In this document: positions 3,899-46,348 of the stretch, one piece after another
Layout: every line of letters starts with the position of its first letter
How positions within the stretch are numbered: position 1 is the stretch's first letter
Virus record (IMG/VR): IMGVR_UViG_3300043399_000877
Coordinates: 310,001-374,000 of that record
Strand: one strand, 5' to 3'
Length of the DNA: 64,000 nt
The notes under the pieces: model-generated
Told to the model about the DNA's origin: nothing
Database searches by the model: none
What the model saw: only the letters and a program-made list of their open reading frames with translations
Program-made: the position numbers and the translations under genes

Positions 3899-4588
3899 CT
3901 ATTTATCAATATCGTTTATATAGACAATTTTTTCAATTTTGCCAATTCCGCTTCCAATGATCATTTCTATAATTGAAAGGCAACTGGTGTTTTTTATATA
4001 AAAATAATTACCACCAACGTAATAATCATTTTCTAAATTGCGTAAAACAACTGAGCCAGCTTTTGCTTTGTCTGGATTATTTTTGATCCAAGTTGCTAGG
4101 GCAGTTTTATGAACAGCAGACGAGCCGTACTTTAATGTTACTTTGTATTCGTATGCTGATGGTTTTTTGGAAACAATTGTGTTTATATTTCCAGACAGGA
4201 ATGTTTCTGATCCCGGTACCGGCGCCCATAATACACAAGGGGTATCAATACTGGTGTCTTTTGCAATCTGATCTAGTAAACTTAGATTGTTTGTATAAAT
4301 TATCAGACTATACATCTCACAGCGCACTTTAAACTCAGATTGCTTTCCCTTGAGATTTTCGATTATTTTATCGCAGTCCTCAATTTGAGATCGGTAGGCA
4401 GTTTTGAACCTTCCTACTTTTATAGTGTCGTTATTGCCCATAACTAATTTCAAACTGTTAAGAGCACCGGCGGTCACACCCCGGGTGGGGTGTGACCTCA
4501 TTACATGCGACAGTGGCGTTCGTATGTGGAGTTTGTACAAGTATTGGCTATAGAAAAGCTTTTCTGAGTTAAGCGTTTTCGACAACAT
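3899..4588 (-). CDS. Hypothetical protein
   Basis: ORF coupled to clpA; start uncertain. Confidence 0.6.
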   Translation of the reverse strand: MLSKTLNSEKLFYSQYLYKLHIRTPLSHVMRSHPTRGVTAGALNSLKLVMGNNDTIKVGRFKTAYRSQIEDCDKIIENLKGKQSEFKVRCEMYSLIIYTNNLSLLDQIAKDTSIDTPCVLWAPVPGSETFLSGNINTIVSKKPSAYEYKVTLKYGSSAVHKTALATWIKNNPDKAKAGSVVLRNLENDYYVGGNYFYIKNTSCLSIIEMIIGSGIGKIEKIVYINDIDK

Positions 4589-6818
4589 TGTTTGACTCAC
4601 TAACTAACACAAGCTCTGTTCCCTGAACAGTAACTTTTACTGCGCCACCGTGACGCAACTTACCAAACAGTATCTCTCTAGACAGCGGCCGCTTGATCTC
4701 GTTGTCGATAACTCTTTGCAAAGGTCTCGCACCCATCTTACGATCAAATCCACGCTCTACAAGGTAATCCATAGCCGAATCGTCTATAGACATTGTGATA
4801 TTCTTGTCAGCGATTTGATCCTTGAGAGTCTTTAAGAATTTACCAACAATCTTGAGCATAGTAACCTTATCGAGTCTACCGAAAGTAACAACGCCATCTA
4901 GACGGTTTCTAAACTCTGGCGGGAAAAACTTCTTGAGATCGGCATCGCTGTATTGTTTTTCCATAGAGTCCCCAAACCCAATCGCGTTCTTTTCCGAGTC
5001 TGCTGCACCGAGGTTGGTAGTAAGAATTAAGATACAGTTTCTTGCATCCGCTTCCTTACCGTTGCTGCCAGTAATGCGGCCATTGTCCATGATCTGCAAC
5101 AAGACACTGCTTACATCAGGGTGGGCCTTTTCAATCTCGTCAAGCAGTAGTACACAATTGGGGTTTTCCTGAAGGCGAGTAATAAGTTGGCCAGCGTTAT
5201 CTTCAAACCCAACATAGCCAGGAGGGCTACCGATAAGTTTACTAATACTGTGCTTTTCTTGATACTCACTCATGTCGAACCGTACAAGTTTAACACCGAG
5301 ATTTGATGCAAGTTGTTTTGCAAGTTCAGTTTTACCAACGCCAGTTGGGCCCATAAACACAAAGCTACCAACCGGGCGGTTATCTGCTTTAAGACCGGCT
5401 TGTGCAACCAGGATCTTGTCAACAATTTGCTCAATTGCAGTTTCTTGCCCGTATACGTTGCCTTTGAGGTTGCGCTCAAGGTTTACAAGATTTTCAGTTT
5501 CTTGTTCCTTAATCTGTGCTTCAGGAACTTTGATCATTTTTGCAAGCTCATTTTGCACGTTTTCAACATCAACAATGCGGTTTGCTGTCTGATTCTGTAC
5601 CTTGAATCTTGAACACGCGATGTCGATTAAGTCAATGGCTTTGTCCGGCAGCTTTTTGTCAGTCTGATATTTTACACTCAGCTTGACGGCAGCGTCGATG
5701 GCCGAATCAGTAATATCAACATCGTGATACTCCTCATAATACTTTCTCAGTCCTTTGAGGATTTCCACAGTTGTCTCTGCGGTTGGCTCATCTACGGTTA
5801 CTCTTTGGAAACGACGCATCAATGCTCGGTCCTTTTCAAAGTGCTTGCGATACTCGTCCCACGTGGTGCTTGCAATAACTTTGATGTTGCCCTTGCTCAG
5901 TGCAGGCTTAAGCATGTTTGCGAGGTCATTTGCGCTATTGCTGCTGCCTGCGCCAGCACCGCTGATCATATGGGCTTCATCAATAAACATGATGGTCTTG
6001 CCCTTGCTGCGAAGTGCCTGCAGAACCAATTTGAAGCGTTCTTCAAAGTCACCACGATACTTGCTGCCAGCTAACATGCTGCCAATATCCAGGGTATAAA
6101 CACTATACTCTTTCAAGAAATCTGGAACGTCGCCGTTAACGATGCGATATGCAAGACCTTCTGCGATAGCAGTTTTACCAACACCCGGATCACCAACAAG
6201 AATTGCGTTGCTTTTGTTTCGGCGACCTAGCGTTAAAGCAAGTTGCTCGATTTCTTCTTCGCGCCCGATAACCGGGTCAATCTTACCGCGCTTAACGTCT
6301 TCGTTCAAGTTAGCAGTAAACATCTTGAGTGCTTTGTTGGCATTTCCGAGGTTTTCTGGTTGTTCCTCTTCAACACCGGCAGCACTGTATTCGCTATTGA
6401 TGTAGTCAACAAAGTTTTCTTTATTGACACCGGCCTGTTCCAGCGCAAAACATGCATAACTGCGCTTTTCACTCAGCATGCTCAAAAATACATCTGGAAT
6501 CTCAATAACGGTCTTACCACTAAACAGGATTTGTGCAAATGCGCGATTCAACACCCGCTCGACAGTTTGTGTCTTTTTGGGCTTGTACTTTTGCATGTCA
6601 GTTTTGATGTCATCAAGTTTAGTTTTGAGATAGTTCTCAATATTTTTCTTGATGAGTTCAACATCGACTCCGTAAGTCTTAAGCATGCCTTCGAAGTTTA
6701 CTTCGCAGAGCATAGCATAGAGAAGGTGCTCTAGTGTGACGTATTCGTGTTCGAGTTTCTTAGCATCGTTAACTGCCTTATCAAAGACAAGTTGTAACTC
6801 TTTGCTGGGTTCTACCAT
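4569..6818 (-). CDS. clpA: ATP-dependent Clp protease ATPase subunit ClpA
   Basis: Clp-N domain, two AAA+ modules (GDPGVGKT, GPTGVGKT), KYRGDFEER, IGF loop, GARPL; SD before ATG 6818. Confidence 0.95.
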   Translation of the reverse strand: MVEPSKELQLVFDKAVNDAKKLEHEYVTLEHLLYAMLCEVNFEGMLKTYGVDVELIKKNIENYLKTKLDDIKTDMQKYKPKKTQTVERVLNRAFAQILFSGKTVIEIPDVFLSMLSEKRSYACFALEQAGVNKENFVDYINSEYSAAGVEEEQPENLGNANKALKMFTANLNEDVKRGKIDPVIGREEEIEQLALTLGRRNKSNAILVGDPGVGKTAIAEGLAYRIVNGDVPDFLKEYSVYTLDIGSMLAGSKYRGDFEERFKLVLQALRSKGKTIMFIDEAHMISGAGAGSSNSANDLANMLKPALSKGNIKVIASTTWDEYRKHFEKDRALMRRFQRVTVDEPTAETTVEILKGLRKYYEEYHDVDITDSAIDAAVKLSVKYQTDKKLPDKAIDLIDIACSRFKVQNQTANRIVDVENVQNELAKMIKVPEAQIKEQETENLVNLERNLKGNVYGQETAIEQIVDKILVAQAGLKADNRPVGSFVFMGPTGVGKTELAKQLASNLGVKLVRFDMSEYQEKHSISKLIGSPPGYVGFEDNAGQLITRLQENPNCVLLLDEIEKAHPDVSSVLLQIMDNGRITGSNGKEADARNCILILTTNLGAADSEKNAIGFGDSMEKQYSDADLKKFFPPEFRNRLDGVVTFGRLDKVTMLKIVGKFLKTLKDQIADKNITMSIDDSAMDYLVERGFDRKMGARPLQRVIDNEIKRPLSREILFGKLRHGGAVKVTVQGTELVLVSESNNVVENA

Positions 6819-6819
6819 T

Positions 6820-7344
6820 TTATTTCCTTCTTTTGTTTTTTTCAAGCTTCTTCAGAGCCATCTGTCGTTTTATTCTAGATACCCTGTCTGTAAACAATAC
6901 ACCACTTAGATGATCATATTCATGCAAAAACACCCTCGCGTCTATGTCTTCATACGTTTGCCCTACGTGTATAACACTTTTCCCGTCAGGTGTCAAAGTG
7001 TCAAACTCAACTAAAATCTTTTTAGGTCGAGTTACCTGCAAGTATATATTTGGAAAACTCAGGCAACCTTCTACTTGAGTCTCTAATTCTTCCGATATTG
7101 CGCTGATTGACGGATTAATAACGGTTACGGCTCCATTAATTGACATTATTTGTTTGTTAATAACCGGCTTCATCACAAATATTTGAGCATCCAAACCCAC
7201 TTGATTGGCTGACAAGCCAAGGCCGCCGTTGCTGTTCATGACGGTGGCCATTTGTAATGAAACGGTCGGAGCATCGTATTTGTCGTAATCAAATTTAACT
7301 ACTGGGGTTTCTAAAATTTTATCGGGGGCTATTATTAATTGCAT
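6820..7344 (-). CDS. def: Peptide deformylase
   Basis: GLGLSANQVG, EGCLS, HEYDHLSG motifs. Confidence 0.95.
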   Translation of the reverse strand: MQLIIAPDKILETPVVKFDYDKYDAPTVSLQMATVMNSNGGLGLSANQVGLDAQIFVMKPVINKQIMSINGAVTVINPSISAISEELETQVEGCLSFPNIYLQVTRPKKILVEFDTLTPDGKSVIHVGQTYEDIDARVFLHEYDHLSGVLFTDRVSRIKRQMALKKLEKNKRRK

Positions 7345-8146
7345 CTCTTAACTCTTTTATTTTTTCTATAATCTCTTGATCGTTAACTGGCCGTAGTGTT
7401 CCTTTTAAGTGAACATACAAATTACCAACTACCCCAGACCTCACATCTGGCAAACCATGGCCACTTATACTCAAGGTTGTGCCAGGCTGTGTCCCTGCTT
7501 TAATATTAACGCGAGCAGCGCGGCCTGTCAAGTCCTCTATAATCAACTCTGTGCCGCACATTAAATCAAAAACATCCACATTGCATTTTAAAGAAATATT
7601 GTTGTTGTCTCTAGAAAACTTAGGGTGCGGTAATACTCTAATCAATATTAATAAATCGCCACGATTAAAGTTTTTTATACTATCATCACCAAGACCAACA
7701 ACCTTAACAGTCTCGCCATCTCGTACTCCTGGCGGAATTTTAACTGTGGCTGTTTCCAATCTCGAACTTGGCAAATGATAACTGGCTACTATTTCTTTCC
7801 CCACGGCAACATCTTCTAATGTAAGATTTACTGAAATACGAACATCCTTGTTTTTTTTAATCACACGATGCATGTTTCTCCCAAACATTTGATTAAAAAT
7901 GTCTTGGATATCATTAACATCAAAGTCACCGGATCTAAATTGAAAGTTGTTTTCAACCGGTGGATTATCGTATTCTTGTCTTTTTGCAGGATCCCCTAAC
8001 ACATCATATGCAGCAGTTATTTCGGTAAACTTCGTATGGTCACCGCCACGGTCCGGGTGATGTTGCATGACTAGCTTTTTGTATGCTCGTTTGATTTCTT
8101 CTTGGGTAGCGTTTTTTGGTACGCCCAGTGTATCATAATGGTTCAT
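7319..8146 (-). CDS. DnaJ/CbpA-class co-chaperone (no Zn finger)
   Basis: J-domain with HPD, C-terminal DnaJ_C (GDL..I, GTQPG, GNLYV). Confidence 0.9.
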   Translation of the reverse strand: MNHYDTLGVPKNATQEEIKRAYKKLVMQHHPDRGGDHTKFTEITAAYDVLGDPAKRQEYDNPPVENNFQFRSGDFDVNDIQDIFNQMFGRNMHRVIKKNKDVRISVNLTLEDVAVGKEIVASYHLPSSRLETATVKIPPGVRDGETVKVVGLGDDSIKNFNRGDLLILIRVLPHPKFSRDNNNISLKCNVDVFDLMCGTELIIEDLTGRAARVNIKAGTQPGTTLSISGHGLPDVRSGVVGNLYVHLKGTLRPVNDQEIIEKIKELRDAINNSPR

Positions 8147-28165: not shown

Positions 28166-29188
28166 TTACATCTTTCTATACTGTTCGTATAACGCTATAC
28201 TGGCAAGATTCTTCATCTTTGCCTCTACCATTATATCACCATGTTCTAGAAATCCCAGAGCCCATTCATTGCATGCATGGTTCCACATGTAATCGCTGTG
28301 CGCCCTTAGTTTGGCTTTTTTGTGTCCGGTAGCAAGCAGTCCGGCAAAATCGGGCCGTACACTAGGATCATGTTGTGACAACTGGTCTTCCCTTGATACA
28401 CTGTAATGAAAAACAGGGCGTACGCCGCGCCAGCTATCAACAATACGAGCAACCCGAGTATCGTCTGGTTCAATATATTCTCCTTCACTGTTGCACCAGT
28501 GATGGTGCAGATCTAATACCAGTGCAACATGCTTCTCAAGTTCAAGACTTGCATCGATGCCCCAGCTATTCTCGTCATTTTCGATAGTGATACTGTTACG
28601 TGCTTCCGGACTCAAACGTGGCAATACGTCGATGATTCCTTGAGGACCACGCCGGCCGCTAATATGAACGTTGCATTTGAAGTCCTGAAATTTCAAGCCA
28701 TAACCCATCCAACGGATAAGGTCAGCATGATATTCAAATTCTTCTACACTACGAGCGACAATATCATCATTATCACTTGCGAGAACAGTAAACTGGCCAG
28801 GATGCATAGACAGGCGAACATCAAGGCGCCGTGCAGCCTCACCCACACGATTGTACGCATGTTCACAATACCTTTTGACATCGCTTTGGCGCCAGAAATA
28901 ACTCCAAGAAGACTCAGTATAAAGAGGAAGCTGGTTAGAACCGAGACGGACCATCCGAAGACCATCAGGCAAACTCCCCACATACTCTACTAAATTCAAT
29001 GCGGCTTGCGCATTGTGTTTCATGATTTCCCATAGTTTATCCTCCGCTACGGAACGTTTCTGTCTGTTCATCCAAGCAACAGTTGTGCTTTTTTCAGAGT
29101 AGTTGCGTTGAATTTCTTCCAGCAATTTCACTGGCTGCTTTTGGTCTGGATGCATGTATTTACATGCGAATCCGATACGTCGTGTCAT
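28166..29188 (-). CDS. uvsE: UV-damage endonuclease
   Basis: RIGFACK, RLSMHPGQF, IENDE, LDLHHH, RAHSD, MVEAKMK. Confidence 0.93.
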   Translation of the reverse strand: MTRRIGFACKYMHPDQKQPVKLLEEIQRNYSEKSTTVAWMNRQKRSVAEDKLWEIMKHNAQAALNLVEYVGSLPDGLRMVRLGSNQLPLYTESSWSYFWRQSDVKRYCEHAYNRVGEAARRLDVRLSMHPGQFTVLASDNDDIVARSVEEFEYHADLIRWMGYGLKFQDFKCNVHISGRRGPQGIIDVLPRLSPEARNSITIENDENSWGIDASLELEKHVALVLDLHHHWCNSEGEYIEPDDTRVARIVDSWRGVRPVFHYSVSREDQLSQHDPSVRPDFAGLLATGHKKAKLRAHSDYMWNHACNEWALGFLEHGDIMVEAKMKNLASIALYEQYRKM

Positions 29189-37078: not shown

Positions 37079-37418
37079 TTTTGTACCCCACTGTTTCGCG
37101 TTTTATGTCGTGATGGCTAAATTCTGCCCAATACAATTCAAATGCCACGCCGCTTTCAAGACACTCAAATTGGTGATATACTCCGGGTTTTACTTTTGTA
37201 TATTCACCTGGTCCCAGGATAGTCTCGTCAATCAAATCATAGTCTTTTTGCCAAACTCTCACAATCATGCGACCGGACTCGACAAAAAATCCATTCCATT
37301 TATACTCGTGAAGATGCTTACTGCAAACTCCACCGGCATTCATTTCTATTCTGTGAAATTCTAAAACACCGTTTGCTTCGACAAGCTCAGTTGTGCCCCA
37401 TATTTTTCCTGCTTTCAT
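37017..37418 (-). CDS. Cupin-domain protein
   Basis: KIWG, CSKHLHEYKWNGFFVESG, PGVYHQF. Confidence 0.8.
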   Translation of the reverse strand: MKAGKIWGTTELVEANGVLEFHRIEMNAGGVCSKHLHEYKWNGFFVESGRMIVRVWQKDYDLIDETILGPGEYTKVKPGVYHQFECLESGVAFELYWAEFSHHDIKRETVGYKNDHETKEIQHPLDREYRPER

Positions 37419-38184
37419 AGTTAAACTCCTTTATATTACTTATTAGACTTTCGAACTTGTCTAAATAGATCATATTGGGGCCATCACTAGGAGCCATAGA
37501 AGGATCAGTATGGGTTTCAATAAAAAAATTACTAATACCAAGAGCGCTAGCAGCCCTAGCCAAGCCAGGGACGTAATCGCGATTTCCACCACTTGAGTCG
37601 CCGTTACCTCCGGGTCGTTGTACGCTGTGAGTAACATCGAAAACAATTGGAACATCATAACTATCGAGCATATACTGGAGACCAGTAAAATCAACAACAA
37701 GATTGTTATAACCAAAACTTGTACCCCTTTCAGTTATCCAAACTTCCGCGGTCCCGGTTTTTGAAAGTATACCTGCAACGTCCCAGGGTGCGAGGAATTG
37801 TCCTTTTTTAATGTTGACCGGTTTACCTGACTTGCAAGCAGCTACTATAAGATCGGTTTGCCGACATAAGAACGCAGGAATTTGTATAACGTCGACCTCG
37901 TCTGTGTATACATCCTTGATTAACATGACCTGTGCAACCGTATGTACGTCAGTCAGGATTTTTAAACCCGGAAGATATTCTTTTAATTTACGGAAGTCTG
38001 CCATAGTGGCTTCAAGACCCTGGCCACGCTTACCGGAAATACTGGTTCGGTTCGCTTTGTCAAAACTGGCTTTAAAATAGTATTCAAAGCCGTATGACTC
38101 GCATACGGCTTTGCAATGTGTCGCAATTTCTAATGATTGGTCAAAACTTTCGTGTTGACACGGACCTGCAATAATTCTCTTCAT
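37387..38184 (-). CDS. kdsA: KDO-8-phosphate synthase
   Basis: IAGPC, KASFDKANRTS, IPAFLCRQTDL, KKGQF, ERGTSFGY, APSDG. Confidence 0.95.
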   Translation of the reverse strand: MKRIIAGPCQHESFDQSLEIATHCKAVCESYGFEYYFKASFDKANRTSISGKRGQGLEATMADFRKLKEYLPGLKILTDVHTVAQVMLIKDVYTDEVDVIQIPAFLCRQTDLIVAACKSGKPVNIKKGQFLAPWDVAGILSKTGTAEVWITERGTSFGYNNLVVDFTGLQYMLDSYDVPIVFDVTHSVQRPGGNGDSSGGNRDYVPGLARAASALGISNFFIETHTDPSMAPSDGPNMIYLDKFESLISNIKEFNYESRKNMGHN

Positions 38185-40747: not shown

Positions 40748-41050
40748 TCAGCGTGACGGGAAGTCAACAGGTTTTTTGACGGCGGCGCGGCGTTCTTCCA
40801 TAGTCATGGGTTCTCTGGGTTCTTCAGTCCAGTGACCGCCCCAGCGTCTCCGCTGATTTTCTTCGTATGTCAACTCTTTGCTAAGATATTCGCCACTCCA
40901 ACTGTCAATTACGTCAGCCATTTCGTACAGTGCTGCAATCACACTGTTTTGATCTCCCCAACCGTATTCCATATAAGAGTTAGAATTGCGAGCATTGAGG
41001 AACGCTGCACGTTCTCTCATAGCGTCTGCTAGGCTTTTCGGGTCTTTCAT
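40748..41050 (-). CDS. Hypothetical protein
   Basis: ORF in operon. Confidence 0.55.
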   Translation of the reverse strand: MKDPKSLADAMRERAAFLNARNSNSYMEYGWGDQNSVIAALYEMADVIDSWSGEYLSKELTYEENQRRRWGGHWTEEPREPMTMEERRAAVKKPVDFPSR

Positions 41051-41385
41051 TGGGTTGCACTGCTCCATTTTAAGCTAAAGAATGTTGCATCTCGTTCGTC
41101 TTTAAAATACCAACAGTTACTATAAATTCGATACTCGTCTTTAATAAATTGTCTGCACCATTCATCGCTTATTTTTGCTTTAGTATGCTGTATTACTTCG
41201 GTCCAACCTTGAGATTTTAGTGTAGCCTTTTCGACTTCTCTTAAGACTTCTCGATCAAGTTCTTCTTGTAATATTTTGGCAAGATTGTCGTTTATTTCTG
41301 TGTAAAGATCATCTGCCTTCTCGACGGTCCAAGTTGCTTTCAGAGTTCTGCTTTTTGCTAGTACAACTGTTTTTTCTATTTTCAT
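41047..41385 (-). CDS. Major-capsid-protein (gp23) fragment fused to small paralog domain
   Basis: IEKTVVLAKSRTLKATWTVE...LAKILQEELDREVL resembles T4 gp23 IDKQVIEAKSRQLKAAYSIE...EINREV; C-terminal FKDERDATFFSLKW. Confidence 0.75.
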   Translation of the reverse strand: MKIEKTVVLAKSRTLKATWTVEKADDLYTEINDNLAKILQEELDREVLREVEKATLKSQGWTEVIQHTKAKISDEWCRQFIKDEYRIYSNCWYFKDERDATFFSLKWSSATQ

Positions 41386-41398
41386 TCACTCCACCTCA

Positions 41399-41602
41399 TC
41401 ACTCCCCCGTATACTTTAACATCATTAGCAACATTTCTGACTCACTCTGCACTCGCCTAATATCCGGATATTTTTCAAAGAATCCTTCGCTCGCCTGACC
41501 GGGTTTACAATGCCATACTTTGCTAGCAGTCCAGTCAAATTCTGCCCAATATCCAGTGTCGGGATCAGACAACCGCATCTTGTTTATACGAGTGATTTTC
41601 AT
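41399..41602 (-). CDS. Small paralog-family protein
   Basis: C-terminal SESEMLLMMLKY. Confidence 0.55.
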   Translation of the reverse strand: MKITRINKMRLSDPDTGYWAEFDWTASKVWHCKPGQASEGFFEKYPDIRRVQSESEMLLMMLKYTGE

Positions 41603-41835
41603 TAACCGAACCTTAAAATAAACATGATAGCGTCCCGCTCATTTTCAAAAAGAAAATACCCCACACTGCCTTCAGCGAAGTCAACTTCATATACAAAAGT
41701 TGCACCGAACTTTTGTTTAATATAATCACGAAAAATGCTATCCGATTCGGGATTTTCTTTAAGATAGCGATTTAAGTTTTGATTTTCTTGAACATCTGCA
41801 AAGTATCGCCCGCTCGTTACTTTTATCATGACCAC
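41602..41835 (-). CDS. Small paralog-family protein
   Basis: FENERDAIMFILRFG. Confidence 0.7.
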   Translation of the reverse strand: MVMIKVTSGRYFADVQENQNLNRYLKENPESDSIFRDYIKQKFGATFVYEVDFAEGSVGYFLFENERDAIMFILRFG

Positions 41836-42257
41836 CTCAACAAAAACAAAATATAGTCTCGTTCGTCTTTAAAAGCAAAGAACAATTCGTCACTGCCACC
41901 GATTCCGTTGGGAAGGTATTGTCCTTCGTGGTCCATTATTACACGTTCCCAATGCCAACGGAATTTACCTCGGCAATTTTGATTGCACCAATTGGCAATA
42001 CGTTCACCATTCCAGTATTCACCCCACATAGCATCAAAATTCCAATCAAGATTGCGATACGGTACATGTGCAATATACGGATATCCAAATAACTGGTCTT
42101 TGACAGTATCGCCACGCTCGTTAAAATCAGGATCATATCTCCTAAAATAACGTTCCCAGGTCTGGCAACCGCTCCGTTCGAGCGCGCGGTCCCAACTGCG
42201 TTCAAGTAACAGATATTTTATCCATAAAAATGGGTTGCGGGGTCTTATATCTTTCAT
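41826..42257 (-). CDS. Paralog-family protein
   Basis: WCNQNC...FKDERDYILFLLRWS. Confidence 0.7.
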   Translation of the reverse strand: MKDIRPRNPFLWIKYLLLERSWDRALERSGCQTWERYFRRYDPDFNERGDTVKDQLFGYPYIAHVPYRNLDWNFDAMWGEYWNGERIANWCNQNCRGKFRWHWERVIMDHEGQYLPNGIGGSDELFFAFKDERDYILFLLRWS

Positions 42258-42640
42258 GTTTGGGGCCATCGTAGACTGAACAACAGTGCATCGCGTTCGT
42301 ATGCAAACCAAAAGTCATTCATGCTGCGAATATATGTGCCCGGTTTAAACGTTTTCCGACACCATTCTTTTGCTTCAATTACATCGCTGTAACGGATTCG
42401 GAATTTTTCGTATCCCAGAGACGTAATATAATCCGGATGATGAGCAATACGGCGATTGTAAATTTTTAAGAAATGACCAAAATGCGACTTCGTTAGAACA
42501 ACCCTTCCGCTGTAACCGGTTTTGCTGGTAAGAATATCTATAATCGGACCAGTCATGGGTTGAACGCCCAAGATATCTTGTGCAATTATGGTTGGCATCA
42601 CCCTGCGTATAATAGGTATTAAAACTTTTGCGTCTGACAT
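42254..42640 (-). CDS. Gol-like major-capsid fragment fused to small paralog domain
   Basis: VLIPIIRRVMPTIIAQDILGVQPMTGP resembles gp23 Gol region; C-terminal FAYERDALLFSLRW. Confidence 0.78.
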   Translation of the reverse strand: MSDAKVLIPIIRRVMPTIIAQDILGVQPMTGPIIDILTSKTGYSGRVVLTKSHFGHFLKIYNRRIAHHPDYITSLGYEKFRIRYSDVIEAKEWCRKTFKPGTYIRSMNDFWFAYERDALLFSLRWPQT

Positions 42641-42861
42641 TCCGTTGCCCGCTTTTGTCCACCGCGCCGAAAGTCCCAGCCTTGGCCTCCCATTGCTTCA
42701 AGACTTTTCCACATTTCAGCGATCTCAACGCATTGCCGTGGCTGTCCGATGCTGCCTACCATTGCAAAACAACTGGTACAGCGATAACCCATTTCACTGG
42801 GGATATCGAATTCAGCTGTGCTTCCACAGGGTAAAAATATTTGAGTTGGTGTTGGTATCAT
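42619..42861 (-). CDS. Cys-rich hypothetical protein
   Basis: LPCG...YRCTSCFAMVGSIGQP..C. Confidence 0.6.
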   Translation of the reverse strand: MIPTPTQIFLPCGSTAEFDIPSEMGYRCTSCFAMVGSIGQPRQCVEIAEMWKSLEAMGGQGWDFRRGGQKRATECQTQKF

Positions 42862-42865
42862 GTCG

Positions 42866-43105
42866 TTAACCGTGTTTGAGAATGAATATTGTTAAGTAGC
42901 GTTCATCGCCACTAAACTTGAGGTAGCGTCGTTTATTTTTTTGCACAACAGTAAATCCCTGAGTCCAGAGCCAGTCTTCAAATCTTTGATTTTTGGTAGT
43001 GTTGGGATATTGATATTTTTGTGGCCAACGTGTATCGGCCAAACTGTCTCCGTACTTCCACTTTTGATAAACTCGATCTAAAAAATCAGGATCTAGTATT
43101 GTCAT
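42866..43105 (-). CDS. Small paralog-family protein
   Basis: FSGDERYLTIFILKHG; start reassigned to MTILDPD. Confidence 0.6.
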   Translation of the reverse strand: MTILDPDFLDRVYQKWKYGDSLADTRWPQKYQYPNTTKNQRFEDWLWTQGFTVVQKNKRRYLKFSGDERYLTIFILKHG

Positions 43106-43289
43106 TCGGACACCCAAGCAAAAACAGAGTATGGTACCGTTCTTCACTAAATTGCACATAGTAGTCATTGTATATGAACCCAGTGCATGTAATTTTAAAA
43201 GCACTAGGGTCCAAATTTTTTCTTATCCAGGCAACCCGCGCGCGAACAGTTGGATCGTCTTCATCACCCAAGCAGATTTTCATGACCAC
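43086..43289 (-). CDS. Small paralog-family protein
   Basis: FSEERYHTLFLL. Confidence 0.6.
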   Translation of the reverse strand: MVMKICLGDEDDPTVRARVAWIRKNLDPSAFKITCTGFIYNDYYVQFSEERYHTLFLLGCPNDNTRS

Positions 43290-43543
43290 CTCAGCATAAA
43301 AAGCGTAACATACTTTTCATCGGGGAACTCCAAATCAACATACCTGACTGTTTTGACTATAGTATGATTTTGTACGTGAAGTGTTTTACACTTATAAGTT
43401 TCTTCAAGATACCGATATACGGATTTAGTGCCGTTGAGCCCACCGTTTTTTATTAAAACGTGAACAGACTCGTTAACAGCACGTTTCCAAGAACGGTAAA
43501 TAGGGCTATTGGCCCGTAAACCATGATATTGTATCATCCCCAC
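43280..43543 (-). CDS. Small paralog-family protein
   Basis: FPDEKYVTLFMLRWS. Confidence 0.7.
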   Translation of the reverse strand: MGMIQYHGLRANSPIYRSWKRAVNESVHVLIKNGGLNGTKSVYRYLEETYKCKTLHVQNHTIVKTVRYVDLEFPDEKYVTLFMLRWS

Positions 43544-43731
43544 CTCAATCGCACCAGTGTTAGTTTTTTTGGATCATATACCTGAATTCCCTGAGTCTTC
43601 ATTCTAATTTTGATCCAATCATAGTCTTTACCGGCCTGGCCAACACTACATGACAACCAGTCGCACACTTCTTGGTAGTTTGACGCATCTATGTTAAAGA
43701 AAACACAGTTGTCTTCCATAGTTAGCCCCAC
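43534..43731 (-). CDS. Small paralog-family protein
   Basis: WL...G..GKDYDW...DPKKLTLVRLRWG. Confidence 0.65.
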   Translation of the reverse strand: MGLTMEDNCVFFNIDASNYQEVCDWLSCSVGQAGKDYDWIKIRMKTQGIQVYDPKKLTLVRLRWG

Positions 43732-43925
43732 CTCAGCATAAACAACGTGCGTTTGTGATCGTCAAATATTTTTATACCAGCACACTGGTAATCAATAAAA
43801 ATCAGTTGGTAGTCGACATCTTTTTTGCCCATGTTTTGATCAATCCAAGACAGTAAGCCATGATAATAACCGGCCCGTCGCCGTTCAAACATTATAATGT
43901 CGTCTGTTATACTCTCAGATTTCAT
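43722..43925 (-). CDS. Small paralog-family protein
   Basis: WIDQNMG..DVDY...FDDHKRTLFMLRWG. Confidence 0.65.
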   Translation of the reverse strand: MKSESITDDIIMFERRRAGYYHGLLSWIDQNMGKKDVDYQLIFIDYQCAGIKIFDDHKRTLFMLRWG

Positions 43926-44331
43926 AATCCAAGTCGCCAGTGTCGCTCATGTTGTCACGACGGCCGCGCTGGCCGTCGTACTCTAGATGGCGGATATAAT
44001 TACGCAAATATCTTTCGATATTTTCACGGCCCACGGGATTCATGCTATGAACATAGAAATCAAAATCTGCAGGAATTTCGAGGTTCCCGTCCATATGCTG
44101 GTCCACAATCCACTGAGCAATATTGAAGCCAGTGGGCTCGTTGTTGCCGAGGTCGTGATCGAAAGAAATGAAGTTCGGAGCAATTAATCCATGATTGATT
44201 ATGGCTTGAATTGCTTGATCTCGATTGCGCACAACTGTCCACTGCTGCTCACGATAACGCTCTTGCATACGGCGAGGGGCCCAAGTAACGTCCTGCAAAT
44301 TGCGCTCGTCATCAATAAAAAGATTCCACAT
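43915..44331 (-). CDS. Cyclic-phosphate-processing receiver-like domain protein (RNA repair associated)
   Basis: LFIDDER, ISFDHDLG, TG, VHSMNPVG. Confidence 0.75.
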   Translation of the reverse strand: MWNLFIDDERNLQDVTWAPRRMQERYREQQWTVVRNRDQAIQAIINHGLIAPNFISFDHDLGNNEPTGFNIAQWIVDQHMDGNLEIPADFDFYVHSMNPVGRENIERYLRNYIRHLEYDGQRGRRDNMSDTGDLDYEI

Positions 44332-45021: not shown

Positions 45022-45387
45022 TTACAGCAGTTTTAGATCCCCGGTTATGGGTTGCAGACGCTCGTGCGTGTCTGGGCCCACAGCAATGCAGGTGTTGGTG
45101 GGCGTGCCGTTAAACACAGTCAAGCCTGCGTCCGTGACAAGCTCAGCGATGAGCCCTGCCGCACGGGCGCGATTGTATACGTCCAGCAACTCTTCCTCGC
45201 TGCTGACACCCACTGCAATCTTGGTAAACTTACCTTCTAGCCATTCTTTGACTCTCGGGTCAGCAAAGTTCACAAGAGTGGCTTTCATGCTTGCATGTGC
45301 GCCCTGCGCGATCTCTTTACCACGCGGCATCTTGAGATCTTTTCTCATTACAATAATCTGTTTCATAGCAGTATCCTTAGTCGTCAA
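45022..45387 (-). CDS. Peptidyl-tRNA hydrolase type 2 (Pth2)
   Basis: KQIIVMRKDLKM..GK..AQGAHA, DAGLT, TCIAVGP, ITGDLKLL. Confidence 0.93.
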   Translation of the reverse strand: MTTKDTAMKQIIVMRKDLKMPRGKEIAQGAHASMKATLVNFADPRVKEWLEGKFTKIAVGVSSEEELLDVYNRARAAGLIAELVTDAGLTVFNGTPTNTCIAVGPDTHERLQPITGDLKLL

Positions 45388-46348
45388 CAGTTACTTCGGT
45401 CTTTGTCTTTTTGGTCTTGATCAGGGAGTAGATGACTCCGGCAGCCAAGATAGCAAAGGTTATAGCCAGTGATATCTCCGGTGGAAATTTTGCCAAGCCA
45501 AGAAGATCGGCTATAAAGATTTTGCTTCCTATAAACACTAGAAGTATAGCCAGTGCTGTTTTTAGGTATTCAAATCTGTGCAGTACCGCCGCAAGAGCAA
45601 AGTACAAGGCTCGCAATCCGAGTATTGCAAAAATATTGCTGGTATAGACAATGAACGGATCTGTTGTAATAGCAAAAACAGCAGGCACACTATCGACTGC
45701 AAAAATCAAATCTGCAAGTTCAACAAGAACCAGTGCAAGGAACAGCGGAGTCACAAACCATTTGCCGGCATGTTTTACGAAGAAACTGTTGCCGTGTAGT
45801 CGTTCGGTTACGTTGAATTTTGCCCTCATGAACTTTAGGGCAGGATTGTTTTCCAAGTCTGTTTCGGACTCTTTTACAAACAACATCTTGACGCCGGTAA
45901 AGATCAAGAACGCAGCAAAAATGTAAAGTATCCAACCAAACTGGCTAACAAGCGTTGCACCCAGCCCAATCATAATACCACGAAGGACGATAACGCCCAA
46001 AATACCCCAGAAAAGAACGCGGTGTTGATATTCTTTTGGAATAGAGAAGAAGCTGAAAATAAGAGCTATAACAAAGATGTTATCGAGCGCCAGTGTTTTC
46101 TCTACAACAAAAGCAGTTAGGTATTCAAATGACTGAACTGCACCGATCTGATACCAGACAAAACCGGAAAATGCCAGTCCTATTGCGATATAAACCGCTG
46201 AAAGTCTTAGACTTTCAGCAACACCGATTTCATGAGAATCTCGATGCAAAACACCTAGGTCAAAAACCAGCAGTGCAAGGACGATTGCCAAAAACAGCAA
46301 CCACATCCACACCGGAGTGCCTAGAAAGAGAAGTGTTAAAAATTCCAA
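45377..46348 (-). CDS. TerC/Alx-family membrane protein
   Basis: EKTLALDNIFV, QHRVLFWG, DLIFAVDSVPA, SNIFAILGLRALYF. Confidence 0.93.
   Translation of the reverse strand: MEFLTLLFLGTPVWMWLLFLAIVLALLVFDLGVLHRDSHEIGVAESLRLSAVYIAIGLAFSGFVWYQIGAVQSFEYLTAFVVEKTLALDNIFVIALIFSFFSIPKEYQHRVLFWGILGVIVLRGIMIGLGATLVSQFGWILYIFAAFLIFTGVKMLFVKESETDLENNPALKFMRAKFNVTERLHGNSFFVKHAGKWFVTPLFLALVLVELADLIFAVDSVPAVFAITTDPFIVYTSNIFAILGLRALYFALAAVLHRFEYLKTALAILLVFIGSKIFIADLLGLAKFPPEISLAITFAILAAGVIYSLIKTKKTKTEVTVDD

Follow-up and report, generated by a model that had tools for sequence, protein, structure and literature searches.

The window analysed here is a 64,000-nucleotide stretch of a 382-kb (381,886 bp) freshwater jumbo phage (IMG/VR record IMGVR_UViG_3300043399_000877, positions 310,001–374,000). 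On its minus strand, a motif scan and iterative HMM search delineated a tandem array of about ten small paralogs with an F.F..E.DA..F.LRW tail (window positions 41047–43925); the C-terminal motif common to these tandem ORFs reads F.F..ERDA..F.LRW. ORFs 1–5 occupy 43722–43925, 43534–43731, 43280–43543, 43086–43289 and 42866–43105, and ORFs 6–10 occupy 42254–42640, 41826–42311, 41602–41835, 41399–41602 and 41047–41385, all on the minus strand; an unrelated 80-aa ORF (42619–42861) lies inside the array. The member at 41399–41602, with the tail ...MLLMMLKYTGE, was counted on tail resemblance only; because it is not listed in the final search (E ≤ 1e-3), nine ORFs of the window count as detected by HMM. 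The array, which is of a cassette-swapping type and whose order is kept in relatives, lies beside 15 tRNA genes and a cREC_REC-type gene (43915–44331, minus strand; PHROG 1479, E 1e-28). The latter served as a context marker; it precedes the array in syntenic relatives, and its orthologues match PF20274. An Rfam scan returned nothing beyond two flanking tRNAs, a scan for sigma-70 promoters and terminators stayed at chance level and was uninformative, and the T4 late-promoter motif was not found near the array.

The tail is part of a family signature in which a C-terminal W-C helix is followed by RW...F.F..E.DA..F.LRW at the protein end. The family profile covers 4,894 representative clusters; nearly all of the 150 matches listed have the domain C-terminally or close to that end, and most of the clusters bear unrelated N-termini. 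The gene ends can be dual-coding: at 41826–41840 (minus strand), for example, TTGAGGTGGTCATGA encodes L-R-W-S-stop, contains the Shine-Dalgarno word GAGGTGG and, through an ATGA, overlaps the stop codon with the start of the next paralog. Such an ATGA overlap is present at 74 of 131 distinct family 3' ends, a feature of translational coupling that the array shows. No relative of the domain was found in Pfam, PHROG or NCBIfam, and neither Foldseek (PDB, BFVD, AFDB) nor VIA-align wide returned anything specific for its fold. An identity as an RRM is unsupported: the best PDB sequence match was to the RRM-like domain of UPF3 (E 0.23, without a Pfam match), and RRMs reached Z 3.5–3.7 in VIA-align, where even the best overall score (Z 5.1) lay under the noise level of the tool. 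An origin from the A domain of the major capsid protein (MCP) was rejected, because hhalign gave 0.1% when the family without its MCP-like members was compared with MCPs.

The final member of the array encodes a 112-aa protein from an ATG start (41047–41385, minus strand), with a strong Shine-Dalgarno word, GAGGTGGAG, 5' of the gene. Its residues 1–55 (41221–41385, minus strand) are an MCP-derived segment, delimited by alignment to T4 gp23, and comprise the post-E-loop P-domain strand (residues 1–22), a shortened loop and the equivalent of the spine helix. The Pfam Gp23 profile (PF07068) matches the protein with E 1.1e-8 and 35.4 bits, above the curated cut-off of 24.4; the match is only partial and pairs residues 1–75 with profile positions 136–219 of 376. 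PHROG 138 ('major head protein') matches with E 2.5e-8, a profile built from 13 homologues matches T4 gp23 chains with E 2.6e-8, and hhalign against ten real MCPs gives a probability of 98.2% (E 3.8e-14), the alignment past the helix being of low confidence. In the homologue-profile alignment, the protein falls on T4 gp23 residues 252–306 (FRIDKQVIEAKSRQLKAAYSIE...EIMLEINREV). Residues 147–206 of PA5oct-type MCPs also align to its capsid segment; these MCPs were used as a proxy for the phage's own MCP, and the contig of this phage is not among the best 80 loci or 120 proteins of the very large clade covered by the Paride MCP scans. About 55 of the 112 residues are MCP-like, and a complete HK97 fold (A plus P domain, about 390–520 residues) is absent. 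The earlier note on this locus, made from sequence alone, had read the ORF as a capsid fragment corresponding to the return strand after the E-loop and the spine helix of gp23. Its ORF, coordinates, quoted sequence and capsid similarity were confirmed, far above chance, and the homology held in the Pfam search, the profile alignment to residues 252–306 and hhalign; the Gp23 match was significant, contrary to the failure that the note had named as a possible refutation.

A second gene of this kind lies 869 nt away, in agreement with the roughly 0.9 kb noted earlier, and encodes a 128-aa Gol-type fusion (42254–42640, minus strand). This protein matches Pfam Gp23 with E 2.6e-9, and MCPs with 98.7% in hhalign. 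Its MCP-derived segment, residues 5–44 by MCP alignment (42509–42628, minus strand; pLDDT 44–51 in the monomer model), comprises the end of the N-arm, an IRRVMPxxIA...GVQPM motif and the start of the pre-E-loop strand. It aligns to T4 gp23 residues 96–131 and thus meets the Gol homology feature (about 93–122), a stretch not matched by the 112-aa ORF, which maps to 252–306. Both N-termini are therefore homologous to MCP, and to different parts of it; no other ORF of the array matches MCP profiles. The Gol-type segment is 57–63% identical to residues 59–98 of the PA5oct-type MCP, which is its nearest match, rather than foreign MCPs. The strand of the 112-aa protein in the window lineage, on the other hand, is closer to classical T4-like MCPs (HMM E 2.7e-8, 42–47% identity) than to the PA5oct-type MCP (E 2.6e-3, 34–38% identity).

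Each capsid segment is followed by a carrier domain of the tail family. In the Gol-type protein, the folded carrier spans residues 45–126 (42263–42508, minus strand; AF2 pLDDT ~93). In the 112-aa protein it spans residues 61–108 (41062–41205, minus strand; AF2 pLDDT 86–91), adopts a beta-alpha-beta-beta-alpha fold ending in ...WYFKDERDATFFSLKW, matches the family HMM with E 4.8e-14 and bears the family signature; the AF2 monomer shows a helix at residues 24–58 plus this small alpha/beta domain, with the strand at pLDDT <50. Within the array, the carrier of the 112-aa protein best matches the last 55 residues of the Gol-type protein, the local score between the two being 78, compared with ≤57 to any other array paralog. 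The carriers are thus each other's closest paralogs, which bears out the earlier note's description of the scaffolds as paralogous. Its statement that the two segments are neighbours in the HK97 fold also fits the topology: they flank the I-domain and linkers, which together are the E-loop equivalent in T4 gp23 (PMC9546572). Between them, the two fragments account for the N-arm and some of the P domain, and neither contains the E-loop tip, the A domain or the C-terminal strands of the P domain. No further captured fragments were detected among 48 long family members, none of which has a Pfam match.

Both fusions recur, at 49–100% identity, on metagenomic jumbo-phage contigs; the architecture of the 112-aa protein stands on independent contigs from ENA, JGI and Logan at 49–90% identity, and near-identical contigs from other metagenomes span its gene. 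Homologues form 13 clusters for the 112-aa protein and 16 full-length clusters for the Gol-type protein, with constant length and intact frames, in independent samples and from different assemblers. An assembly chimera is thereby excluded. Purifying selection acts on each half of each protein: dN/dS is 0.13–0.20 for the whole 112-aa protein, 0.14–0.22 for its capsid part alone and 0.12 for the Gol-type fusion. Conservation within the 112-aa protein peaks in the strand of capsid origin (0.85, as opposed to 0.65 for the carrier), and the MCP-invariant residues AK.R.LKA, QDL and E..E are retained. The proposal of selection rather than debris thus held, on the grounds of the constant-length clusters, the strand conservation and dN/dS values of 0.12–0.20 for the two proteins.

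Where both genes are present, the Gol-type gene lies 5' on the same strand, 0–1.5 kb away, which is the order of the corresponding parts in MCP itself. The two genes are hence linked in MCP order. This holds for the window, L034, a 5188-bp contig, L004/L131, L118 and L120, and the genes directly adjoin in L119, L121 and L122; the arrangement is retained across lineages only about 50% identical. The survey of related phages proposed in the earlier note accordingly found co-occurrence, with some lineages (L001; L005/L123–L130) having the strand/helix gene without a nearby Gol-type gene. In a wider subfamily (L007, L010, L018–L032), only the helix (AKILQEEIDWE) and the carrier remain, the strand being lost or decayed; the Gol-type gene also accompanies this helix-only form in L010 and L132. 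In L024 the Gol motif has decayed, and the carrier persists in such decayed lineages. The suggestion that the two segments might co-assemble remains an inference, supported by the conserved colinear linkage alone and weakened both by the lineages without a nearby Gol-type gene and by poor conservation of the putative partner strand in the Gol-type protein (0.47).

The pair is accessory and occurs in few phages. The 13 and 16 fusion clusters stand against at least 8,000 clusters for MCPs of this type. Searches of deposited phages, PA5oct-like cultured phages among them, and of 185,579 genomes of bacteria and archaea returned neither fusion. No head-morphogenesis module (portal, protease, scaffold) was found around the 112-aa gene, which is surrounded by small ORFs and tRNA genes instead; in Paride, the real MCP sits with portal and protease genes. 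The MCP donor is unresolved: the concatenated segments gave a star-like tree with three groups. Another contig, L133, carries a second, independently built MCP derivative without an A domain in a non-structural region; it retains other parts of the MCP P domain and is possibly a degenerate copy. In an RNA-labelled metagenomic run, three unitigs of 151–154 nt map only to the two capsid-fragment genes, with DNA carry-over not excluded. The single family member in PA5oct goes unmentioned in the main text of the transcriptome study of that phage.

As a best guess, we suggest that the two genes form a functional pair presenting a soluble, split N-arm and part P domain of a T4-type MCP, each half mounted on a small folded carrier domain drawn from an accessory gene family that diversifies fast. 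The MCP homology, the purifying selection, the linkage in MCP order, the mutual closeness of the carriers and the A-domain-less derivative in L133 speak for this explanation. We infer that the two strands of capsid origin, located on either side of the E-loop in MCP, pair up and that the spine helix packs on them, which would give an MCP look-alike unable to form capsomers. This mimic may act as a competitive decoy or antagonist that occupies a host factor recognising a conserved MCP face, for example a Lit-type sensor reading the Gol epitope with EF-Tu, or another capsid-sensing abortive-infection system. With the sensor occupied but not triggered, the late burst of real capsid protein would set off no cell suicide. 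The function is untested, and we regard the decoy role as the likeliest single use but as clearly more apt to be wrong than right. Its support comes by analogy and context: only two array members match MCP profiles, the setting is accessory and conflict-like, and capsid proteins recurrently trigger bacterial immunity, twice with EF-Tu (Lit/Gol and CapRelSJ46; PMC9712102) and also through Avs7/Dsr1 (PMC13581612). The low-confidence capsid segments beside confidently modelled carriers would fit peptides that fold on binding.

Several points speak against a decoy. There are no functional, binding or expression-timing data, and the host, hence any capsid sensor, is unidentified. The T4 Gol peptide alone is known to activate Lit, so a protein with the Gol stretch might set the sensor off instead of blocking it. 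The MCP A domain, which both fragments lack, is what Avs7-type sensors chiefly bind (PMC13581612). In addition, some lineages have the strand/helix gene without a nearby Gol-type gene, others show decay of the strand or of the Gol motif, and the putative partner strand of the Gol-type protein is poorly conserved. A bolder version of the decoy reading, towards which we lean no further than towards the decoy itself and which we would not yet favour, holds that an MCP copy was split at the E-loop and its halves placed on paralogous carriers, and that the product antagonises capsid-sensing immunity or poisons rival capsids.

Two other explanations remain possible. In one, the fragments interfere with or control capsid assembly, an A-domain-less MCP piece binding MCP subunits or capsomer edges and thereby either poisoning the capsids of co-infecting T4-type phages or delaying premature polymerisation of the phage's own MCP. 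Retention of the MCP-invariant residues, the greater likeness of the window-lineage strand to classical T4-like than to PA5oct-type MCPs and the existence of a second reduced MCP copy without an A domain in L133 favour this idea. It entails, however, a risk of self-poisoning, because the phage's own MCP has the same conserved motifs; the location outside the head module and the absence from most phages with this MCP type argue against an essential assembly role; and the Gol part is nearest the PA5oct-type MCP and not foreign ones, with the tree leaving the donor unresolved. The other explanation is plain exaptation, in which pieces of a duplicated MCP became N-terminal extensions (a long helix, a flexible arm) serving the carrier's own function, such as oligomerisation, so that the capsid similarity is merely historical. 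The helix-only subfamily, the decay of the Gol motif in L024, the unrelated N-termini of most family clusters and the lack of Pfam matches among the 48 long members are in line with this view. Against it, the window lineage keeps exactly the MCP-invariant residues, and its strand varies less than its carrier; lineages only about 50% identical retain both of two distinct MCP pieces, in MCP order; and L133 independently retains other MCP P-domain parts.

We consider it unlikely that the segments are capsid-docking signals, inserting next to genuine MCP in the prohead and thereby getting the carriers packaged and delivered to the next host. The strands are flexible and strongly conserved and could extend a β sheet edge, and jumbo phages do package many proteins, with 93 virion-associated proteins in PA5oct (PMC7318152). 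However, the one family member found in PA5oct, EST35_0247, has no mass-spectrometry note in its record, whereas its neighbour has one; MCP segments occur in only two of about ten array members, and nothing points to protease sites or to presence in virions. Least likely of all, and contradicted by the data, is that the genes are debris, either the decaying leftovers of a partly duplicated MCP or the product of a chimeric assembly. The capsid-like parts have indeed decayed in some lineages, and the L133 derivative may be degenerate, but intact frames of constant length in 13 and 16 clusters, dN/dS of 0.12–0.20 and near-identical contigs across the gene speak against it.

The known systems closest to the pair differ from it in several respects. 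The Gol/Lit/EF-Tu system of the e14 prophage resembles the present case in that the N-terminus of the partner gene is homologous to the Gol-bearing stretch of gp23 (96–131); here, this stretch is on a separate small protein with a carrier, outside the capsid gene, and the 112-aa ORF has another piece (252–306). The T4 vertex protein gp24 is likewise a second MCP-derived gene, and the fragment profile matches it with E 0.0026, but gp24 has a full-length HK97 fold, builds pentamers and belongs to the head module, whereas the proteins here retain 40–55 MCP residues each, have no A domain and belong to an accessory array. P4 Sid, SaPI CpmB, PLE TcaP and cf-PICI Ccm, small accessory proteins that redirect or disturb the assembly of HK97-type capsids in a genetic conflict, are possible analogues for the assembly explanation; they are encoded by phage satellites, unlike the pair. 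Apart from Ccm, these proteins are not known to derive from MCP, and no split MCP piece mounted on a carrier is known among them. The nearest conceptual precedents for an interfering protein of capsid origin are the animal restriction factors Fv1 and enJS56A1, capsid-gene pieces or copies that are under selection and used against capsids. Both belong to eukaryotic hosts, which acquired them from retroviruses, whereas here the virus carries the fragments. In its mode of action, the proposed decoy would resemble DSAD1, a phage protein that occupies DSR2, the sensor of a virion protein, the tail tube (PMC11087589). That work does not report DSAD1 to be a piece of the triggering protein, whereas the candidate decoy is a homologue of its own trigger.

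Capsid proteins are among the main signals by which bacteria recognise phage infection (Lit, CapRel, Avs7/Dsr1 and TIR systems), and the full-text literature searched yielded no account of a phage countermeasure made out of the capsid protein itself. The linked, conserved pair is a concrete candidate for such a countermeasure. If the decoy reading is true, it would mark the first instance of a virus turning pieces of its own capsid protein into decoys, and would provide the first function for a family of small phage proteins with about 4,900 clusters. Regardless of that guess, parts of a split capsid gene have been put to new use as small accessory proteins that purifying selection maintains. 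The roughly 4,900 clusters have in common a domain without a Pfam, PHROG or structural relative, and the genes of this family are chained by a junction that is at once protein tail, ribosome-binding site and next start codon.

The gene for the 112-aa protein (41047..41385, minus strand) starts with ATG, is preceded by a strong Shine-Dalgarno word, GAGGTGGAG, and closes a dense minus-strand array in which neighboring genes share a few bases. An earlier note, made from the sequence alone, had quoted this ORF and pointed to a kinship with T4 gp23, spanning the strand that returns from the E-loop and the spine helix. Both claims held: the translation is identical to the quoted sequence and the Gp23 profile match is significant. 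Indeed, the protein scored 35.4 bits against Pfam Gp23 (curated cut-off 24.4; E 1.1e-8), with residues 1-75 aligned to profile positions 136-219, and matched PHROG 138, "major head protein", with an E of 2.5e-8. A profile of 13 homologues found the T4 gp23 chains (E 2.6e-8; aligned gp23 residues 252-306), and a profile-profile comparison of the family with ten real major capsid proteins (MCPs) gave 98.2% probability (E 3.8e-14).

The second fusion, the 128-aa Gol-type protein, is encoded 869 nt away on the minus strand (42254..42640), in line with the distance of about 0.9 kb given in the earlier note. It matched Pfam Gp23 (E 2.6e-9) and, in hhalign, MCPs (98.7%), and aligned to T4 gp23 96-131, including the Gol peptide stretch, which is not carried by the 112-aa protein. 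These two proteins were the only array members with MCP-profile matches. On PA5oct-type MCPs, our stand-in for the MCP of this phage, the Gol part corresponds to residues 59-98 (57-63% identity) and the strand/helix part to residues 147-206 (34-38% identity, one 8-residue gap). Neither protein includes the E-loop tip (99-146) or any MCP sequence beyond the spine helix. The Gol piece stops where linker 1 begins, and the strand/helix piece opens with the strand returning from the E-loop equivalent and extends through the spine helix. Based on the T4 gp23 alignments and the T4 head structure (PMC9546572), the two pieces thus flank the E-loop equivalent, and in this sense the notion that they are neighbors in the HK97 fold held. 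In that structure, gp23 aa 66-105 form a flexible N-terminal region (PMC9546572).

While the 112-aa protein passes the Pfam Gp23 threshold, it is not an MCP: the A domain is missing, as is most of the fold, and its gene lies outside the head module. AF2 predicted a confident β-α-β-β-α core for both fusion proteins (pLDDT 86-96), with low confidence in the capsid-derived N-termini (residues 1-22 of the 112-aa and 1-40 of the 128-aa protein); the model of the 112-aa protein contained a long helix over residues 24-58.

Both capsid pieces are fused to a carrier domain ending in F.F..E.DA..F.LRW, which is shared by about ten tandem ORFs at 41047-43925. As the earlier note had held, the scaffolds are paralogous, the two carriers being mutual best matches in the array (score 78 vs at most 57). 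An iterative HMM search of the window and 28 related loci yielded 164 such LRW-tail ORFs of 54-161 aa, in arrays reaching more than 25 genes per 7 kb. With a profile from 34 diverse members, 4,894 representative clusters (50% identity; E ≤ 0.001) were found among 1.84 billion proteins; of 150 such hits, almost every one had the carrier C-terminal or nearly so. No Pfam, PHROG or NCBIfam model and no sequence relative in the PDB was found for this family, members are named only "hypothetical protein", and PA5oct-like phages have a single one (Paride_0044 / EST35_0247). Structure searches revealed no specific relative of the carrier fold (Foldseek best E 0.85-0.9; VIA-align best Z 5.1, below tool noise), and BFVD matches were uncharacterized small phage proteins throughout. 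A capsid origin of the carrier itself was ruled out, since the family without its capsid-like members showed only 0.1% probability against MCPs.

The tail L-R-W-S/G-stop is encoded by TTGAGGTGG(T/G)CATGA (41826-41840, 43280-43294 and 43534-43548, minus strand; family-wide in L001-L032), and its codons double as a Shine-Dalgarno word, GAGGTGG, and as an ATGA in which the stop overlaps the start of the next paralog. Among 131 distinct 3' ends in the family, 74 show this overlap, so constraint on the RNA may account for part of the "protein motif". Two further metagenomes (sequencing runs X3 and X4) hold contigs with matching flanks but, in place of a 77-aa paralog (41603-41832), unrelated sequence of similar length (230 and 84 letters); array cassettes thus turn over between strains. 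Within the array, an 80-aa ORF without the LRW tail (42619-42861) overlaps the Gol-type gene start and has four cysteines in zinc-ribbon-like spacing (C12, C28, C31, C44). The most widely conserved paralog is a 137-161-aa member (41826-42311; motif …WERYFRRYDPDF…GYPY…WC..NC.GK.R…GG.D..F.AFK.ERDY), usually found near capsid-fragment genes, with orthologues in L001, L004, L007, L010, L018, L019, L021, L024 and L028.

The contig (IMGVR_UViG_3300043399_000877; 381,886 bp; subtracting 310,000 from a contig coordinate gives the window coordinate) derives from a phage with 15 tRNA genes and T4-type core genes, including a baseplate wedge protein, clamp loader, thymidylate synthase, DNA ligase, UvdE (Pfam; 28166-29188), a ClpB-like double AAA+ chaperone (Clp_N, AAA_2, ClpB_D2-small; 4569-6845), a full DnaJ-like protein (J and C-terminal domains; 7319-8146) and TerC (Pfam membrane protein family; 45377-46348). 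Besides TerC and UvdE, the auxiliary genes include what we take to be, from reading the sequence, KDO-8-phosphate synthase (37387-38184); its L033 orthologue carries the DAHP_synth_1 family. The nearest cultured relatives are Pseudomonas phage PA5oct and kin (clamp loader 56% identity), followed by Phosso, Atu_ph07 and RsoM2USA. Metagenomes from freshwater, aquaculture, wastewater and retting contain near-identical DNA.

Purifying selection acts on both fusion genes. Homologues of the 112-aa protein form 13 clusters (49-100% identity), all of 106-116 aa with both halves kept, and those of the Gol-type protein 16 full-length clusters; IMG/VR and metagenome contigs provided additional fusion loci. 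Nei-Gojobori dN/dS of the 112-aa gene was 0.20 against L033 (90% aa identity; capsid part 0.18, carrier 0.27), 0.13 against L034 (85%; 0.14 and 0.12) and 0.20 against L004 (51%; capsid part 0.22, carrier not computable as dS was saturated). The Gol-type gene gave 0.12 against L034 (Gol part 0.21, remainder 0.08). The capsid strand, residues 1-22, is the best-conserved segment of the 112-aa family (0.85 vs 0.65 for the carrier), and the residues retained are the MCP-invariant ones (AK.R.LKA, QDL, helix acidic positions). An MCP-like loop (H.[IV]D.E.EL), shortened in the window lineage, is still present in homologues P0011-P0013 and L118. The pair is accessory in distribution: the PA5oct-type MCP clade comprises at least 8,000 clusters (~78% identity) vs 13 and 16 for the fusions, neither of which turned up in any of 50,697 deposited phage records or in 185,579 genomes of bacteria and archaea. 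X15, an aquatic metagenome, was the sole RNA-Seq-labelled run with the region; its three unitigs (41179-41471 and 42243-42393; at most one mismatch each) are confined to the two capsid-fragment genes within a 3.7-kb stretch, a mere hint of expression, as DNA carry-over is not excluded.

Where the two genes co-occur, they share a strand and the Gol-type gene is always the upstream one, matching the order within the MCP. They are 0.4-1.5 kb apart in the window, L034, a 5188-bp contig, L004/L131, L118 (374-kb contig) and L120, and directly adjoin in L119 (uncalled ORF), L121 and L122 (329.5-kb contig). In L010 and L132, the Gol-type gene accompanies a helix-only form, a wider subfamily consists of helix AKILQEEIDWE and carrier only, and the Gol motif has decayed in L024. 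The Gol-type gene was not found in L001 or the L005/L123-L130 lineage within the available flanks. In the simplest history, which remains an inference, a partial MCP copy might have entered the array, where a carrier cassette, duplicated or inserted at the E-loop, then split it in two. The donor lineage could not be placed, the tree being a three-group star; the L005 lineage retains a PA5oct-type signature (AKTRKLSAEWTFE vs AKTRKLSARWTFE), and for the window lineage the scores favor classical T4-like MCPs. In PA5oct-like phages, the next gene downstream of the real MCP gene encodes a homing endonuclease (Paride; L036:5569-7146), conceivably a route for partial duplication or mobilization of MCP gene pieces.

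Other, independent reduced copies were found on separate contigs. In a non-structural region of another jumbo-phage contig (L133:3920-4709), an 81-aa Gol-only ORF overlaps a 190-aa ORF that keeps the post-E-loop strand and C-terminal P-domain part and lacks spine helix, A domain and LRW carrier. P0030 and P0055 (3.8- and 13.4-kb contigs) are stand-alone, carrier-less Gol-only proteins of 73-75 aa, laid out as unrelated N-terminus, Gol stretch and following strand; PHROG 12830, a "major head protein" profile of 128 positions that closes with the Gol stretch, could represent the same kind of protein. Together with the window fusions, these cases show that A-domain-less reduced MCP copies arose more than once in this phage group.

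We judge the capsid-fragment pair to be real and conserved, and the sources searched offered no precedent: the full-text literature covered described neither MCP-fragment proteins encoded by phages nor the carrier family. The nearest analogues in possible action are satellite capsid-redirecting proteins, animal restriction factors derived from capsid genes, and trigger-competing anti-defense proteins such as DSAD1, but none consists of a split MCP fragment fused to a carrier. Debris or a chimeric assembly is all but excluded; the earlier note's preference for selection held (whole-gene dN/dS 0.12-0.20; 13 and 16 clusters), and the fusions are not unique to one assembly, as homologues at 49-100% identity lie on other contigs and both genes are linked in several loci. 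Beyond the inferred mimic structure, the evidence discriminates poorly among functional readings. Interference with, or control of, capsid assembly remains possible and ranks just below the decoy reading that we favor with low confidence; in T4, capsid expansion involves a concerted movement of I-domain linker 2, the P-domain strands and the spine helix, which also contribute to inter-capsomer contacts (PMC9546572). Structural exaptation of the pieces without mimicry ranks only slightly lower again, and docking to the capsid for packaging is unlikely.

The data establish that the two genes are MCP homologues in part, are under selection, are linked and colinear with the MCP, have paralogous carriers and an accessory distribution, and encode capsid-derived segments that are flexible yet highly conserved. 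The mechanism is inferred, as is co-assembly of the two proteins, an idea of the earlier note for which linkage is the only support. The capsid-derived strands of both proteins would pair as at the E-loop base, the spine helix of the 112-aa protein would pack on them, and the product would be a soluble copy of part of the MCP N-arm and P-domain face, unable to form capsomers. Two points count against a decoy: the T4 Gol peptide alone activates Lit, and Avs7-type sensors bind chiefly the A domain (PMC13581612). We prefer it because the array diversifies and has tRNA genes and a cREC_REC gene associated with RNA repair as neighbors, the setting of conflict genes, because the Gol stretch has been documented as an epitope of bacterial immunity that acts with EF-Tu (PMC9712102), and because capsid sensing is widespread, with EF-Tu again involved in Avs7/Dsr1 (PMC13581612). 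Although functional data are lacking, the pair may thus serve the phage by decoying or antagonizing a host factor that recognizes this conserved face of the MCP.
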